A stretch of 64,000 bases of DNA. Source: Thalia democratica (taxonomy: Eukaryota). How positions within the stretch are numbered: the first letter of the stretch is position 1; every line of letters starts with the position of its first letter. Shown in pieces: positions 19,064 to 32,784 of the stretch. The notes under the pieces are model-generated. The model did no database searches and had not been told where the DNA came from. It saw nothing but the letters and a program-made list of their open reading frames with translations. The position numbers and the translations under genes were made by a program. Location of the stretch: positions 75,206,001-75,270,000 of the forward strand of contig OZ241830.1 of NCBI GenBank assembly GCA_965202585.1, in the 5' to 3' direction.

Positions 19064-20174
19064 CTATTGAAGTTTATATATTCTTTCATCTACGCTTTGC
19101 AGGAGGGTGGCAAAGTGCTTCTTCCTGATGCTCATCATGTCTGGATCAATGTTCAGCTTGTCAGGAATGTCAGGGTGTTCTTCCACCAGCTGAAGCGCAA
19201 ACTCAATGCAGAACAACCCGCAGCTGGTCCCATCCTTCTGCAGGTCGTGCTCAATGCACTCAATTGACCAATCAAAATCCTCAAAGTTCCAACCGGTTGG
19301 TTCAGGGTCGCAAGAGTGCACATCTCTGGACTTTTTTCCAGCGTAAATGATTGGCTTATTTTCTGGACCCTTTCCTTTGTCATCTTCTTGTTTTTTGTGG
19401 TTGATCTCAGTAAACCACTGAAGCAGATTATTACCAAGGGTTAACTGGCGCTCTCTGTTTTCACTGGCCAAGGAGTCAATGATGTAAATTGTCCTTGTAG
19501 CCTTGCAAAGCATGAACAATATCCAGTGATGCACGTCTTCGCTCAAACTGAGGTTGTACACGCCCATCACCCGCTCCTTGTCCTCTTCAAATTTTGGAAT
19601 ACCTTCCCTGGTGACACTAATCAACTCAGTTGTGGATGTCTCAATGTAGTGCACGGGAGTGTCCTTGCACTTAAATTTGATGATTATCAAGTCCAACACG
19701 TTGCCTATGAGTAATGAGTAACTTGTCTTGGATGGCTAGGCTCATTAAGTCCAAGCCATTGAACGTGTAGGCGCTCTCTTCTGCCGCCCTGCACTGGATC
19801 ATGACCTCCTGTGCAAATAGCCTGTCTTGGTTTTGGTTGAAGAGGTTGTACCACTTCAATTTGAGGTTGTATGGGAGGTGCTGATTGTATACAACACATT
19901 CAAGCAGCTTTTGAATGTGCCAGTTTCTTAACATCTGCCAGTGAGCCATTTGTTGCCTATGTTGTTCCTCTAAAGCGAGTTTCTTCTCTTCCTCTAAGAC
20001 AGCAAGTTCCCATTCTTCATCCTCATCTGAGTCAATGGAGACTTCATCTGCTTCATACTGAACTGGGTGAACTTCATCATGCTTTTTTTCAGCAACTTCA
20101 GCTTGGTTGGCTTCCTTGTTGGCTAAATCCTGTTCACCTTTTTCTTCAGAATTGTTGATTGGTTTGATAGTCAT
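19064..20174 (-). pseudogene. Ulp1/SENP-family (peptidase C48) cysteine protease, frameshifted by a 7-bp tandem duplication
   Basis: Catalytic signature HW-IL...IIDSL...QKDGTSCGLF. The ORFs 19671-20174 and 19064-19699 fuse into one 367-aa ORF if one TGAGTAA copy (19708-19721) is removed. Spot GC counts of 43-55% against AT-rich flanks. Possible short 5'UTR intron 20253-20210. Confidence 0.85.
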
Positions 20175-27212: not shown

Positions 27213-29171
27213 AAAATTAGAAGACTAATATAGCATTGAGACAAACTTTTCTTAGATAAAAGTTTAGATTAAATAATATTAGACGTGCTAATTTTAAACT
27301 TTATCAAATATTTTTTACAGGATGTAAAAGGAGCAATAACTTGAATGTCAAATTGAGATCGAATGACGTGTTTCTATTTCGTGCAAATTTTACCTATTTC
27401 GCGCCAAATTTTACAGCAAATTGTTCTGGACTGTAGTAAGATCTATCTAAATTCCACTATTTAACTTGAAATAGCTACACTACATCAAATAAAATATAGG
27501 TAATTTTTGAAAATATTCACTTTTGAAATTTGCTTTAACTGTTTTGTAATGATACAGGTTACTTAAACTTCAAAGCAGTTTAAGTCTTTTGAGTAGGAAG
27601 TTTTGAATTATTTTAAATATTTTGCACAAATTTAAAATTTCATATAACTTTTTACTGGTTCAAGTATTATCCACTTTAACCTTTTTTATTACTCAGATTT
27701 AATATGGCAGAGCGACATGCACAAGTTTGATGTCATTCTTGAAATCAAACAAAGAATTGCTGTTTTGCGCCAAATGTTGCTACAAACGTCTTTGGACTTA
27801 AAAAAGACCTTTCAAACTTTCACAATTCAAACGCAGTAGCTATATTGCAGTAAACAAGGGATATAAAATTTCCACAATTTTAAAATGTGCACTTTCACAT
27901 CAAACTTTCTACTCGAGCTAACTTTTTTTTTTTTTGTTGTTGTCGCTAATTTAAAGTTAGAAGGTTTTTTTTTTGTCTTTTTAGTAAAATTATATTAAAT
28001 TGTTTTGAATTTTTTACCTGCACTTCATATTTTCATAAAGTTTTGAAGGTTAAAAGTTCTTTTTTTTTAATGTTGATTTTCCTTAATTATTCAAAATTAA
28101 AAGTATTAGTTATTAGATTTATATATTTTGGTACAATTCACCATTTCAAAATTTTCTACAATTGTAATAGGTTGAAATTGTATTTAGGAGATGATTTTTG
28201 TAATAGTGTTTTATCAACAAATTTTGAATTAAATTTATAGCTTAGATTATTTAGCTGATTATTAAACTATTTCGTACTTGTTTAGAGTTTGTATGAAGTA
28301 ATTCAAAGTGCTTTTAATGATAAATTTTAAGTATTAAGTCAATTTAGATTTAAAGTTTTGAACAATTATTACTTTATTTTCTTCGTTATTAATAAGTAAG
28401 TTAGCAAGTAAAAACATAGAGTACCAAATTTAAGTTCTGTGAAAGTATAATATTTATTTTTTTAGATATAAAAACGTTGAAATATTGTAAGAATTGGTAA
28501 AAGTAACTAATTCACTTTTTGCATTTATCAATTAAGGCACATACATTTTTAATTAGTTTTGATCACTAATTAACTAGGTCTGTAACATTTAAGAACTAAG
28601 ATTTGTCTTTTTTATTAGACATGAAGTCTTACAAGTTAACATTAAAAAGAAAAAAAAATGATATTGTTTGCTGGCCAGATTACAGTCATTAAAATTTTCG
28701 TTTACTTCAAACATTTATAAAATATTTTTACATTTCTATACGGTCGTTGTTTCAATATATATTTAATTGTGCTACTCTTTGGTTCACAATATATATATAC
28801 GAGTCTTCTTGGCGATTCTTACGATAGGTATATTGTTTATGAAGGACTAGATTTTCATGATAAATATTGATTTTAAATTAACATGCCAGCAAAGTTTGAT
28901 CTGCTTTTATAAATATACACAATAACTGTTCAACATCACAGAATGTCTTGTTAATTTCTGCTATCATATTTTTATATCGAAGTAATTCATCGGTTTGCCA
29001 AAAATATACATTTTAAAATCAACAAAATTTAAAGATTTTGTAATAAAAACTTACATTAGGCTCTTAATCTAATTATTACTCTTTATAAGTGGTCTAATAT
29101 TGCCTAATTTATCATAATTAGATTTTAAATGATATTTTTATAGTGATTACTATAAATTTTTTGTAAATAAA

Positions 29172-29267
29172 TGCGGCGCTGAATGATCTTTTTCTAAATG
29201 GTGCGGCCCGCGAGCAATTTTTCCTAAGAAAATAAGCCCGCAAGTTACATAAGGCTGCCGACTCCTG
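29172..29267. mobile_element. Right end of a hAT-like MITE just upstream of the 729-aa ORF
   Basis: GCGAGCAA...GCCCGC...AAGGCTGCCGACTCCTG; similar end at about 35850-35907. Confidence 0.5.
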
Positions 29268-29415
29268 GTCTGGGTAAAAATTACACAATTAGATATTTCA
29301 AAATCGAAATTTACAGAAATTCGTGTCAAATTTTTATTTATGACGTATTTACTTAAAATTTAAAATCCTCATAAGCTGTTTTTTATTTCTTTCTAATTAA
29401 ATAAAAAATAGTAAA

Positions 29416-31605
29416 ATGCAAAACAAAAAATTGCAATTTATTGTTGCTTTTACCTGCACAATTTTACTTGGTGCAGGTAAGTTCGTTTACGATGCAAAAG
29501 TTTTTCAAAATGAAAACAAATCGACATACTGTAAGCTGCTAGGCTTTGTTGAAAGCCTTATAGAAGAGGAAGAAAAAACGAGTTTCCAATCTTTTATGGA
29601 TGCCCTTTTCTACAAAAAAAGTTGCGAAGAAAAATCGTTGTATGTCTTGCTGCTCAAACTATTTAGTCAAACGACGGCGAAATTAATTCGATTTGTCGAA
29701 AACAAGGCTCACGATGACTCCATTAATGTGTTGGTTTTTTTACTTTTCTGTCTACAGAGTTTATACATGCTAAACAGTTTGTCGATAATCTTGGAAAACA
29801 AACTAAAAAATTTTTGCAAGTTGAAACAAAAAAGTTCAAACACATTACAACTCAGTGAAGCTCCAAACTTGAAAGTTGAACTTAAAAAAGACGGATTAGA
29901 GGAAGAATCTGTTTTAAATGTTAATTTGAATAAAGAAAATTCACCGAACTCGAAAACAAATCAGCAGACAAGTTTATCTTCAAAAACCAAAGTTATTCCT
30001 AAATCAAGTTTGCAAGGAAGTCAGTCCAAAGACAGAACACCTTCAACTATAGATGGTACTTTTAATACAAGTTTGCAAGTTCCTCCATTAGACCTCAGCA
30101 GTTTGAAACCAGGTCCTTCAGAAGAAATAGCATCAGCTGGAGAAACGCTAAACGAAGATTTTACAAACTTGCAAAAAAGTACGTCTGATTTGATAGTTCA
30201 AAAGCCGATATTAAAAGAGACGGAGCAAGATATTTTGTCCTCAACAAATACACAGGAAAAACTATTAGGATCAGAACAGGATACTTGTAAGAAATTGCAG
30301 AAAAATACTTTTGATTTTAAACCCACAGCTCTCGCTTCTAAAACCGAAGTTCTTTCTAACACAAGTCTAAAAGGAAACCAGTTGGAGCGCAAAATATCAT
30401 CTTTAAGTACAAACAATAATTCTGATTTTAAAAGTTCGGCTCCCGTGTTAACTATACTTGATTCTTGTATTCCAAATTCTGCCAGCAGTTTGAAAGAAAA
30501 TATTCTTTTAAAGTCCAAGAATCTTTTAAAAGTTCCTCCGGGATTCAAGGAAATTTCAGAGCAGACTTCTACCAGTTTCTCAACTGACACCTTCACAGAT
30601 ATGAAGAGCACTGATGGTTTTCGAACAAACCAAAATAAATCGTCTGTTCCACCCGGCTTTGAACCGATAATTAAAAATACTGACAAAATGACGACTGAAA
30701 GCAGGTCATTGAAAGATTCTCAAACAAAAAAATCAAACGCCCCTCCAGGTTTTGAGAACTTTGAACCAAAACCACTAAGTTTCACATCATCATCGTCTCA
30801 AACCAGTGTTGGGAGAAAAACGAAGTTTGGTGTACCTCCCGGGTTCGAGAAAATGAAATCTCCATCGGAACCGAAACTGAGGGAAATTTACTCCTGTATT
30901 TCGAAACAAAGTAGTCTGCTTAAAGTTCCGCCAGGCTTCAAGCCTTTACCTGACACATCAAAAGTAGATATGATTCAAAATGCGGAATTTATCAACAATG
31001 AAAGCAAAACTTCAAGTTTGTTTAAGCCAGTATTGTCTAAATATGCAGAACAGATAAACGATAATACCAAAACTGAATCATTGAACGTCCCACCCGGGTT
31101 TAAAACTATCAATAATTCTGTTTCAACAAGCTATGACAATTCAATCATAAAAGTTTCTCCACCAGGGTTCGAACCCATACCTAGTTCTGGTACCTTTTTC
31201 CCGGGATTAGAACAAACTCTGTTGAATGATTTCAGCTTAAAAACTTTGCCTGTAGCAAAACTTATGTCTGTTCCACCTGGATTCGAGTGCAAAGACCTGG
31301 CAAGAAATAAAAAAATAAATGATTTAACAGAAGCATCTTGTGTTGACCTCAATTACGAAGAAAAGAATACGAAAAGAAAAATATTACCACCACCCGATTT
31401 TAATGGAACTAAACATTTAGTCTCGAAACATACTAACTATCTTACCTTAAATGTACCACCTGGTTTTAAAAGCAGTGAACTGCCACAAAGCATTCCACAA
31501 CCTGCAAACTTTCTAAGCAACAGCTGTAAACAAACAAAAACACCGCCTGGTTTCAAACCACATTTAAAGGTGCCTCCAGGTTTTCAACCTAAATCTAACG
31601 CTTGA
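29416..31605 (+). CDS. Uncharacterised 729-aa protein with hydrophobic N-terminal segments and 11 PPGF motifs in a Ser/Thr/Lys-rich disordered tail
   Basis: 2190-nt uninterrupted ORF in AT-rich DNA. PPGF codons start at 30535, 30649, 30742, 30835, 30928, 31090, 31159, 31273, 31456, 31543 and 31573, with 10 different encodings. AATAAA signals lie downstream. Confidence 0.85.
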   Translation: MQNKKLQFIVAFTCTILLGAGKFVYDAKVFQNENKSTYCKLLGFVESLIEEEEKTSFQSFMDALFYKKSCEEKSLYVLLLKLFSQTTAKLIRFVENKAHDDSINVLVFLLFCLQSLYMLNSLSIILENKLKNFCKLKQKSSNTLQLSEAPNLKVELKKDGLEEESVLNVNLNKENSPNSKTNQQTSLSSKTKVIPKSSLQGSQSKDRTPSTIDGTFNTSLQVPPLDLSSLKPGPSEEIASAGETLNEDFTNLQKSTSDLIVQKPILKETEQDILSSTNTQEKLLGSEQDTCKKLQKNTFDFKPTALASKTEVLSNTSLKGNQLERKISSLSTNNNSDFKSSAPVLTILDSCIPNSASSLKENILLKSKNLLKVPPGFKEISEQTSTSFSTDTFTDMKSTDGFRTNQNKSSVPPGFEPIIKNTDKMTTESRSLKDSQTKKSNAPPGFENFEPKPLSFTSSSSQTSVGRKTKFGVPPGFEKMKSPSEPKLREIYSCISKQSSLLKVPPGFKPLPDTSKVDMIQNAEFINNESKTSSLFKPVLSKYAEQINDNTKTESLNVPPGFKTINNSVSTSYDNSIIKVSPPGFEPIPSSGTFFPGLEQTLLNDFSLKTLPVAKLMSVPPGFECKDLARNKKINDLTEASCVDLNYEEKNTKRKILPPPDFNGTKHLVSKHTNYLTLNVPPGFKSSELPQSIPQPANFLSNSCKQTKTPPGFKPHLKVPPGFQPKSNA

Positions 31606-32784
31606 GTACCAATCAATACTTTTGTGTATAACCCGCAGAAATCAAAATTTTGTTTTTAATCATAAAACAAAATTATGAAGAACTTTTCAACAAAAAGTTC
31701 TAGCAATCTAATCTCATCCAGTTGGTAGCAAGGTACAACAGGAAATCCAGAATATATAAAAATAAATTATAAAAACAATTTAATTAGAGCCAGAGGCGAG
31801 GCAACTGGCTAAACAAACTGCCTCTTATAAATAATAAAATAAATATCCGGTATATTTTGTCTCATTTGTATAAATTAATTACTTTATTTTTTCCTAAGAA
31901 ATAAATAAATATGAATAGTCTTAAATATCTTTTTTTTACTACTTATTGAAAATATTCACTTCTATTTTATTAAAATACTTAACTATGTTAAAGTACAGTT
32001 TACAAACTAGCATTTTAGGTAAATTAATATTGCAATGTTTAGCTTTTTAAAGTTATTTAACTAACCAAACTAGTTTTAACAGTTGCTTGGCTTTTAACAT
32101 GCTCATCATTTAAACTTACTCAAGTCTTTTTTTATTTTAAAAACTTTTTAACATTATCAGCTGTAAACTTTTACGCTTAAAATAATGAAAATATTTAAAC
32201 CAGTGAATTTTCATTAAAGTATTTAGAAAAATAAAACCTTATTCGTAATAGTTCAAACTTAAAAAAAAAATTTTTTTAAGTAGATATTTTTAAGATAAAA
32301 CTGAAAATTTTACACTTATTTAGAAATTTAACTTTATGTAATATCATAAACTTAGTTTTAGCTACATAAGTTATATAAAGCCCGAAAGATTATTTCAGTG
32401 AGTACATTGTAGTTATTGTGATTAGTAAAAACTTTTAAGTAGTGCTAAACTTTTAGGGCAAAAATTGGCCCAGCAGGCAGAAATCAGTAGTTTGTGTCAT
32501 ATTTTAAACTTGTGTAGTACTATCAAAACTAAGCATTTATACAAAAAATAATTCTAAATGTGCTCTATTTTATGTGTAGGTAGCAGTAGGATCCTTTTTA
32601 AGTTAATTCTAATGTAATATTTTATTTACAACCCAACCTAACCACTTAGTTAAACAGTCTACAATTTGTGTAGTATGTTTATGAGTCTTGCTATAATTTT
32701 AGTAGTGCTTCACTCCTTGTTAGCCAAGATATCGAATATAATCATAACCGGGAACTAGCGACACTTATCAAAAAAATATTTGTT

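Follow-up and report, generated by a model that had tools for sequence, protein, structure and literature searches.

A multigene family of Thalia democratica encoding putative membrane-anchored proteins with conserved PPGF motif arrays, candidate multivalent ligands of GIGYF-type GYF domains

In a 64,000-nucleotide stretch of Thalia democratica DNA (contig OZ241830.1, positions 75,206,001 to 75,270,000, hereafter the window), the intronless open reading frame (ORF) at 29416..31605 on the forward strand is best explained, from sequence comparison, as a functional gene with a single exon, a member of a formerly undescribed multigene family that is restricted to a lineage and evolves fast. The ORF encodes 729 amino acids plus stop, and its product carries an array of 11 PPGF motifs behind two hydrophobic segments. 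Smy2/GIGYF-type GYF domains canonically bind PPG followed by a hydrophobic residue, and multivalent docking of GIGYF is therefore considered the most likely mechanism: with a probability of roughly 45%, the protein would be tethered to a membrane and would serve there as a multivalent platform on which the GYF domain of GIGYF docks, concentrating or titrating GIGYF together with 4EHP, DDX6 and CCR4-NOT. An earlier reading of the same DNA (the original prediction) had proposed such a GIGYF ligand; those of its parts that are testable in silico were supported, and the multigene family and the conserved flanking elements had been missed.

The family was delimited in the 802-Mb assembly, where a six-frame search returned 30 matching segments and a profile search with the N-terminal domain (N-domain) returned 16. 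The genome holds seven intact family genes encoding 657-769 amino acids with 5-18 PPGF motifs each, all of them intronless. Four intact genes (724-769 amino acids) are located on the chromosome-scale contig C6, namely the window copy and three paralogs at 81%, 67% and 70% identity to it (the C6 paralogs are called p2, p4 and p5 below), two on C8 (c8a and c8b, 657 and 660 amino acids) and one on C2 (c2, 741 amino acids, N-domain 25% identical). At least six pseudogenes or fragments containing stop codons are distributed over C6, C2 and C5.

Outside this genome, relatives are few. The original prediction recognised no family for the protein, and this was confirmed by searches of Pfam, PDB, the ESM Atlas and protein collections on the scale of billions. 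In Pfam nothing above the cut-off was found for the window protein, and the seven paralogs gave only weak or compositional matches, such as Extensin_2 for the c2 repeat. A word-index search of 5.8 billion clusters (E at most 0.01) gave no match with the whole protein or with residues 365-729, the ESM Atlas gave no usable match for residues 1-150 or 365-729, and a PDB profile search gave 0 matches at E up to 1. An exhaustive search of 1.84 billion cluster representatives with a hidden Markov model of the N-domain recovered five short proteins and no others. All five are deposited in ENA, and the two whose contigs were examined (L020 and L021) come from marine metagenome assemblies of project PRJEB4352 (Tara Oceans). 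Longer members of the matched clusters were P0006 (390 amino acids), with an N-domain 63% identical to that of c2, and P0009 (311 amino acids), whose subfamily is absent from the T. democratica genome. Both share the build of the window protein, with a hydrophobic N-terminus, a helical domain, a second hydrophobic segment and PPGF arrays. A bacterial GGDEF protein placed in a cluster with these relatives was rejected as an obvious mis-clustering. The distribution of the family appears to be limited to one group of marine zooplankton.

The coding nature of the ORF is indicated by several lines of evidence. The GC content is about 25% across the 64-kb window and 34% at 30-32 kb, and a chance origin of a 729-codon frame in DNA of about 25% GC is effectively impossible. 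The frame is also open in the six other paralogs, and the overall ratio of non-synonymous to synonymous substitution rates (omega) between the window gene and its paralogs is 0.46-0.58. A cryptic in-frame intron, from a donor of perfect appearance (CAG|GTAAGT, 29478/29479) to an acceptor-like CAG at 29755-29757, was rejected because every paralog keeps this stretch open and no other part of the protein is under stronger constraint (omega 0.13-0.28). That the ORF is a decaying or non-functional duplicate, for example a passenger in a large repeat, hardly deserves credence. At least six family copies are indeed pseudogenes, and the window copy does sit within a duplicated segment of 25 kb or more; however, seven ORFs of 657-769 codons have stayed open at a GC content of 25-34%, omega lies below 1 and the non-synonymous distance (dN) at the motifs is about 0, and short flanking elements are invariant amid diverged surroundings.

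The PPGF array occupies 30535..31584 on the forward strand (residues 374-723), with motifs starting at residues 374, 412, 443, 474, 505, 559, 582, 620, 681, 710 and 720 and spacers of 6-50 residues between them. The count of 11 exact motifs given in the original prediction holds; when the protein was shuffled 20,000 times, a shuffled sequence contained 0.009 motifs on average and 1 at most. The motifs are written in 10 distinct 12-nucleotide (nt) codon strings, with CCTCCAGGTTTT used twice, and in all four Gly codons, again as first described. No DNA repeat was detected in the window array by Tandem Repeats Finder, and the array is read as old and scrambled at the DNA level. The accompanying claim that the motif is kept at the protein level agrees with its conservation down to paralogs of 25% identity and to the metagenome homologues, with almost no non-synonymous change in the motif codons. 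As for the two supposed motif variants, both strings exist in the protein and only one of them is related to the motif. PPPDF, at 31387..31401 on the forward strand (residues 658-662), is a decayed twelfth motif with Gly changed to Asp, because the three close paralogs p2, p4 and p5 read PPPGF at the same position. FPGL (FFPGL, residues 594-598) is a separate conserved patch, at which the paralogs read IPGL, FMGL and LPGS.

Across the family, the motif extends to a consensus [L/F]-x-V-P-P-G-F-[E/K/Q]-P-I, with a hydrophobic residue at -3, Val at -1, Glu, Lys or Gln at +1, Pro at +2 and Ile at +3. Among the 79 PPGx tetrapeptides of the seven genes, 76 are PPGF, one each is PPGY, PPGL and PPGA, and none is PPGW. 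Four motifs are invariant in all seven paralogs, including the final one (LK-x-PPGF), which in five of them closely precedes the C-terminus. The arrays of other members are repetitive in different ways: c2 carries a 51-bp tandem repeat in 20.3 copies, and the repeat units are about 34 residues long in P0009 and about 18 in P0006. The arrays are accordingly taken as having expanded independently among members, and such separate expansions point to selection on the motif and, apparently, on a high number of copies.

Selection was compared between regions by the Nei-Gojobori method among the four C6 genes (window, p2, p4 and p5). In the PPGF codons of the window gene, p2 and p5, 0 non-synonymous and 6-18 synonymous differences were found, at synonymous distances (dS) of 0.19-0.80. 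In pairs with p4, which has one PPVF and one PPGY, dN in these codons was 0.054. A dN/dS analysis at the motifs in orthologs had been suggested as a check in the original prediction; run here on the paralogs, it gave dN of 0-0.054 at dS of 0.19-0.80, indicating that the motif is conserved. In comparison, omega was 0.44-0.79 in the array spacers, 0.51-0.69 in the linker (residues 127-369) and 0.13-0.28 in N-terminal residues 1-140 within the C6 group. For the most distant pair with intact motifs, the spacer rate would lead to about 26 replacements in the motif codons, and 0 were observed. These comparisons support the view that the PPGF motif is functionally constrained and is no by-product of composition or repeats.

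Within the same pairs of C6 genes dS varies by region, for the window gene and p5 from 0.20 in the N-domain to 0.62-0.80 in the array, and these regional differences indicate gene conversion or recombination among the C6 copies. Two other patches of conservation were observed in the tail. A F/Y-D-F-E-x-x-x-P-V patch precedes the first PPGF in three C6 paralogs (residues 329-335 of p2, p4 and p5) and in c2 (residue 293), and its counterpart in the window protein (30421-30447, residues 336-344) has degenerated to SDFK. The patch recalls the FDF motif, which binds DDX6/Me31B. The other patch, LREI[YF]S, is shared by the C6 and C8 subfamilies amid tail sequence that otherwise does not align, and is found at 30877-30894 in the window (residues 488-493) and at residue 364 of c8a and residue 379 of c8b.

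The N-terminal part of the protein contains two hydrophobic stretches, as originally noted, with Kyte-Doolittle means over 19 residues of 1.77 (from residue 6) and 1.86 (from residue 107) in the window protein and of 1.47-2.23 for both segments in every member. Segment 1 (29431..29478, forward strand, residues 6-21) is signal-peptide-like or a signal anchor, with a charge-free run of 15-17 residues in eight of nine members (that of c2 is longer), one or two Lys/Arg before it and small residues at its end (GAG, IA, ITA). It is followed by a conserved helical N-domain of about 80 residues (29479..29718, forward strand, residues 22-101; invariant Y38, Q85 and E95), which is predicted to be lumenal or extracellular, and by a predicted transmembrane segment (segment 2; 29719..29793, forward strand, residues 102-126). 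In all nine members, segment 2 has a Kyte-Doolittle mean of 1.81-2.23 and a charge-free run of 19-25 residues. In eight of the nine, acidic residues equal or outnumber basic ones in its N-terminal flank (0-3 Lys/Arg against 2-5 Asp/Glu) and its C-terminal flank is basic (4-5 Lys/Arg against 1-2 Asp/Glu), and in c2 the C-terminal flank is charge-balanced. By the positive-inside rule, this acidic-before and basic-after arrangement predicts that the long tail faces the cytosol, with segment 1 either cleaved or acting as a hairpin partner. The tail begins with a fast-evolving linker rich in Ser, Thr, Lys and Asn (29794..30522, forward strand, residues 127-369), little of which can be aligned with its counterparts in C8 and C2. 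That the tail is disordered is suggested by its composition and by the fast evolution of its spacers; it has few Cys, a Ser, Thr and Pro fraction of 0.22-0.31, which is not mucin-like, and no Gly-X-Y periodicity.

The same features bear on a different topology, in which segment 2 would not span a membrane. Either the whole protein would then be secreted or the tail alone would lie in the lumen or outside the cell; its role would be structural or in a matrix, and PPG might for example be a site for prolyl-4-hydroxylase. An N-terminus that resembles a cleavable signal peptide, the multicopy, fast-evolving and lineage-specific character shared with many secreted structural proteins, and the compositional Extensin_2 match of c2 would fit such a protein. 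It is nevertheless unlikely, since segment 2 is strongly hydrophobic and free of charge in every member, its basic C-terminal flank in eight of nine members predicts a cytosolic tail, and the tail has few Cys, no Gly-X-Y repeats and a Ser, Thr and Pro fraction that is not mucin-like. Moreover, a hydroxylation site would not need the invariant Phe.

A candidate reader of the motif is encoded in the same genome. The Pfam GYF model (PF02213) scored above its cut-off at two C5 loci about 26 kb apart. The GYF exon occurs there twice in inverted orientation (L018 at C5:71797430 and L019 at C5:71770945), and these two copies suggest a recent duplication of the GIGYF gene or of part of it. The spliced GYF domain, WFYRDPQGQVQG|EFSSDQMLEWYSSGYFMNDL, spans a GT-AG intron; the exons read ...KVKWFYRDPQGQVQ-G | EFSSDQMLEWYSSGYFMNDLELR..., with the intron CAAG|GTAAAG ... 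ACAG|GA. The domain keeps the signature G-x-F-X4-M-X2-W-X3-GYF, the Asp of the Smy2 class and, by offsets from the first Tyr, all eight GIGYF2 contact positions (Y538, D540, Q546, F549, W557, Y562, F563 and L567). These eight residues hold both prolines, exclude a side chain at the Gly position and form a hydrophobic pocket that takes Phe and not Trp, and the ligand consensus is PPG followed by a residue (phi) that is hydrophobic but not Trp, with the Gly structurally needed (PMC10187677). The PPGF motifs of Drosophila HPat directly bind the GYF domain of GIGYF (PMC6648886). All 11 motifs of the window protein have this core, and Trp is absent from the phi position in the seven paralogs. With an intact GYF pocket in its own genome, the PPGF core makes the family motif a textbook ligand of a domain present in the animal.

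Taken together, the following mechanism would be compatible with these features. The protein would enter the membrane through its N-terminal signal-like segment and the downstream transmembrane helix, the small helical domain would stay on the lumenal or outer side, and a disordered tail of about 600 residues would project into the cytosol. The tail may act as a scaffold whose sole strongly selected feature is the set of 5-18 short linear PPGF motifs (11 in the window copy). By avidity, this array could dock the animal's GIGYF multivalently onto the membrane; the GIGYF partners 4EHP, DDX6 and CCR4-NOT would come along, and translational repression would be concentrated or sequestered there. 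The gene family, the selection on its motifs, the pattern of hydropathy and charge and the matching GYF pocket in the genome are established here, and from these features we infer the membrane insertion, the tail orientation, the GYF binding and the downstream effect. The possibilities raised in the original prediction, that the array sequesters GIGYF or seeds condensates, are purely inferential.

Several observations weigh against the docking mechanism. The membrane insertion is predicted from hydropathy alone, and AlphaFold2 modelling of the N-domain with an 11-row alignment gave all helices at a predicted local distance difference test score of 48.5 and no confident fold. Sequence other than the motif array evolves nearly neutrally in the C8 pair and in the C2/Tara pair, with omega of 0.6-1.2. 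Short contigs from four sequencing runs span the flanks and the ORF alike, in a DNA-like manner, and have no bearing on transcription. At the level of the motif, phi is almost always Phe, though GYF pockets also accept Leu, Ile, Met and Val, and the conserved flanks (-3, -1, +1, +2 and +3) reach past the known GYF core. The near-exclusive Phe and the extended flanks therefore make a different or additional Phe-specific reader possible.

Such a reader may be a non-GYF module for Phe and Pro, either ALG-2 or a lineage-specific partner, in which case the same membrane scaffold would organise trafficking or signalling instead of translation. This is a possible but clearly less probable explanation, and the uniform Phe in 76 of 79 PPGx together with the conservation beyond the GYF core speaks for it. 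ALG-2 is a Ca2+-dependent adaptor whose type-2 motif PxPGF is found in Sec31A and PLSCR3 at endoplasmic reticulum (ER) exit sites, and its type-2 consensus is [P/hydrophobic]-P-x-[P/hydrophobic]-G-[F/W] followed by a large residue. The motifs of the c2/P0006 subfamily are PPPGF and satisfy PxPGF. However, the residue before PPGF in the C6, C8 and P0009 members, where PxPGF has its first Pro, is Val in 42 of 65 cases and Pro in 9 of 65. Because Val stands at the required Pro in most motifs, the ALG-2 type-2 consensus fits only the PPPGF motifs, mainly those of c2/P0006. Among the other consensus sequences known for proline recognition, including those of WW (PPxY), EVH1 (FPxxP), Homer (PPxxF) and SH3 (PxxP), none accounts for all four invariant residues.

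Alternatively, the array might have no single dedicated partner and might act as a cohesive array of Phe stickers, like the POM121-type FG domains, forming a selective phase or condensate at the membrane. The order of a transmembrane anchor, a long disordered region rich in Ser, Thr and Lys and regularly spaced Phe motifs is reminiscent of such proteins, and the motifs of the C8 subfamily are mostly FGVPPGF and hence contain FG. This explanation is very improbable, since the Phe is no more invariant than the two prolines and the Gly, which points to a shaped polyproline-II/turn ligand and not to a generic sticker. In addition, the window protein has 1 FG against 13 GF, and no nucleoporin family was found by Pfam in the window protein or its paralogs.

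In addition to the protein, short elements on both sides of the gene are conserved within the family. The 3' untranslated region (3'UTR) contains an element of 37 nt, GCCAGAGGCGAGGCAACTGG..AAA.AAACTGCCTC, at 31789..31825 on the forward strand, 184 nt past the stop codon. It is present in the window and at the loci L002, L004, L005, L013, L014, L015, L016, L020 and L021, and 19 + 9 of its positions are the same in every intact gene, in the pseudogenes and on both Tara contigs. Its carriers include paralogs that share as little as 25% protein identity, and the UTR sequence next to it has diverged past alignment. A scan of the 802-Mb genome that allowed up to 3 mismatches gave 13 occurrences of its 22-nt core (0 for the reversed control), and all 13 lie downstream of family members in the orientation of the gene. 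In the Tara contig L021, the element adjoins the last PPGF directly and provides the stop codon. No Rfam family was found for the element, and its folding z-scores ranged from -1.8 to 0.0; a tentative hairpin-plus-pseudoknot model pairs in 97.7% of cells, with no covariation in the sequence. Two overlapping AATAAA poly(A) signals follow at 31833..31843 on the forward strand, 8-13 nt past the element, and AATAAA occurs at a similar distance in 12 of 13 aligned copies, the exception being L021.

Upstream of the gene, an TTATGACG box with a cAMP response element (CRE)/ATF-like TGACG core was observed at 29338..29345 on the forward strand, 71 nt before the ATG. The box is kept at the same relative position in all seven intact paralogs and in the Tara contig L020, and the surrounding DNA has diverged. 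A TATA-like patch, CATAAGCTG, with an invariant TAA, lies at 29370..29378 on the forward strand, about 40 nt before the ATG, and is kept in the seven genes and in L020 and L021 (alignment columns T78, A79 and A80 invariant). The box and the patch probably form the core promoter of the family. Together, the 3' and upstream elements speak for a compact gene that is transcribed independently and is controlled post-transcriptionally in a way specific to the family. A more elaborate scheme is doubtful, in which zooplankton-specific scaffolds would pin GIGYF-4EHP to a membrane such as the cortical ER and their own mRNAs would be controlled or localised through the 37-nt 3'UTR element, as a lineage-invented circuit for spatially restricted silencing.

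Some of the copies on C6 lie within larger duplicated segments. The segment that holds the window copy and the one that holds its nearest paralog are tandem duplicates at least 25 kb long (18826-43823 against C6:75270001-75298026, 82-92% identity), and a third, inverted C6 copy near C6:75.86 Mb has about 10 kb of flank in common. The distant paralogs share only the gene and short flanks. A compact mobile element carrying the ORF was considered and rejected, since the C6 copies have collinear flanks of 10-25 kb and the DNA shared with distant paralogs is limited as described. The duplicated block also contains an Ulp1/C48 peptidase-like ORF at 19064-19699 on the reverse strand (Pfam PF02902, E 1.3e-6). 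Immediately 5' of the gene, the window has a very high-copy repeat with GCGGCCCGCGAGC-like units at 29002-29335, in which the summed contig depth was 6,000-30,000 compared with about 300-800 nearby in three genome runs, with many junctions and loose ends.

The family can be compared with several known systems. ZNF598, tristetraprolin (TTP), TNRC6/GW182 and HPat have the same PPG-phi core in a disordered region, read by a Smy2-type GYF pocket, and the exact PPGF form occurs in ZNF598, TTP and HPat (PMC10187677, PMC6648886). Unlike these recruiters, which are soluble, associated with RNA or ribosomes and have 1-3 motifs, the PPGF family has 5-18 motifs and two conserved hydrophobic, putative membrane segments, and it shows no RNA-binding domain and no sequence relationship to ZNF598, TTP, TNRC6 or HPat.

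A parallel in topology is CD2, a type I membrane protein with GYF-binding PPG motifs in its cytosolic tail, which forms with CD2BP2 the founding GYF ligand pair. In CD2 the motif is PPPGHR and occurs twice, the ectodomain is of the Ig type and the GYF partner of the CD2BP2 type, whereas the window protein has 11 PPGF motifs followed by Glu, Lys or Gln and a small, predicted helical ectodomain without detectable homologues. The DPF repeats of Eps15 for AP-2, the Trp motifs of GW182 for Argonaute and the FG nucleoporins including POM121 likewise combine many motifs of 2-4 residues, fast-evolving spacers, variable copy number and avidity; the PPGF arrays share this design principle, but they have another motif and another presumed reader and are not homologous to these proteins. 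The ALG-2 type-2 ligands Sec31A and PLSCR3 have a Pro-Gly-Phe core in common with the family and are membrane-associated in the early secretory pathway, but they carry one motif and no array, and their required Pro is usually Val in the PPGF family.

What is new here would be the architecture, membrane-anchored and with 5-18 valences, in which an orphan family puts a known motif-domain code to use. Whatever the partner, the family is a clean example of short-motif array evolution, with frozen motifs, spacers at omega 0.44-0.79 and independent expansions, and it carries an unusually sharp family-specific 3'UTR element amenable to reporter assays. If the docking mechanism is true, the array would be a natural high-avidity GYF ligand usable as a tool, and the family would represent a way of positioning or titrating the 4EHP-GIGYF repressor that is different from that of the soluble recruiters.

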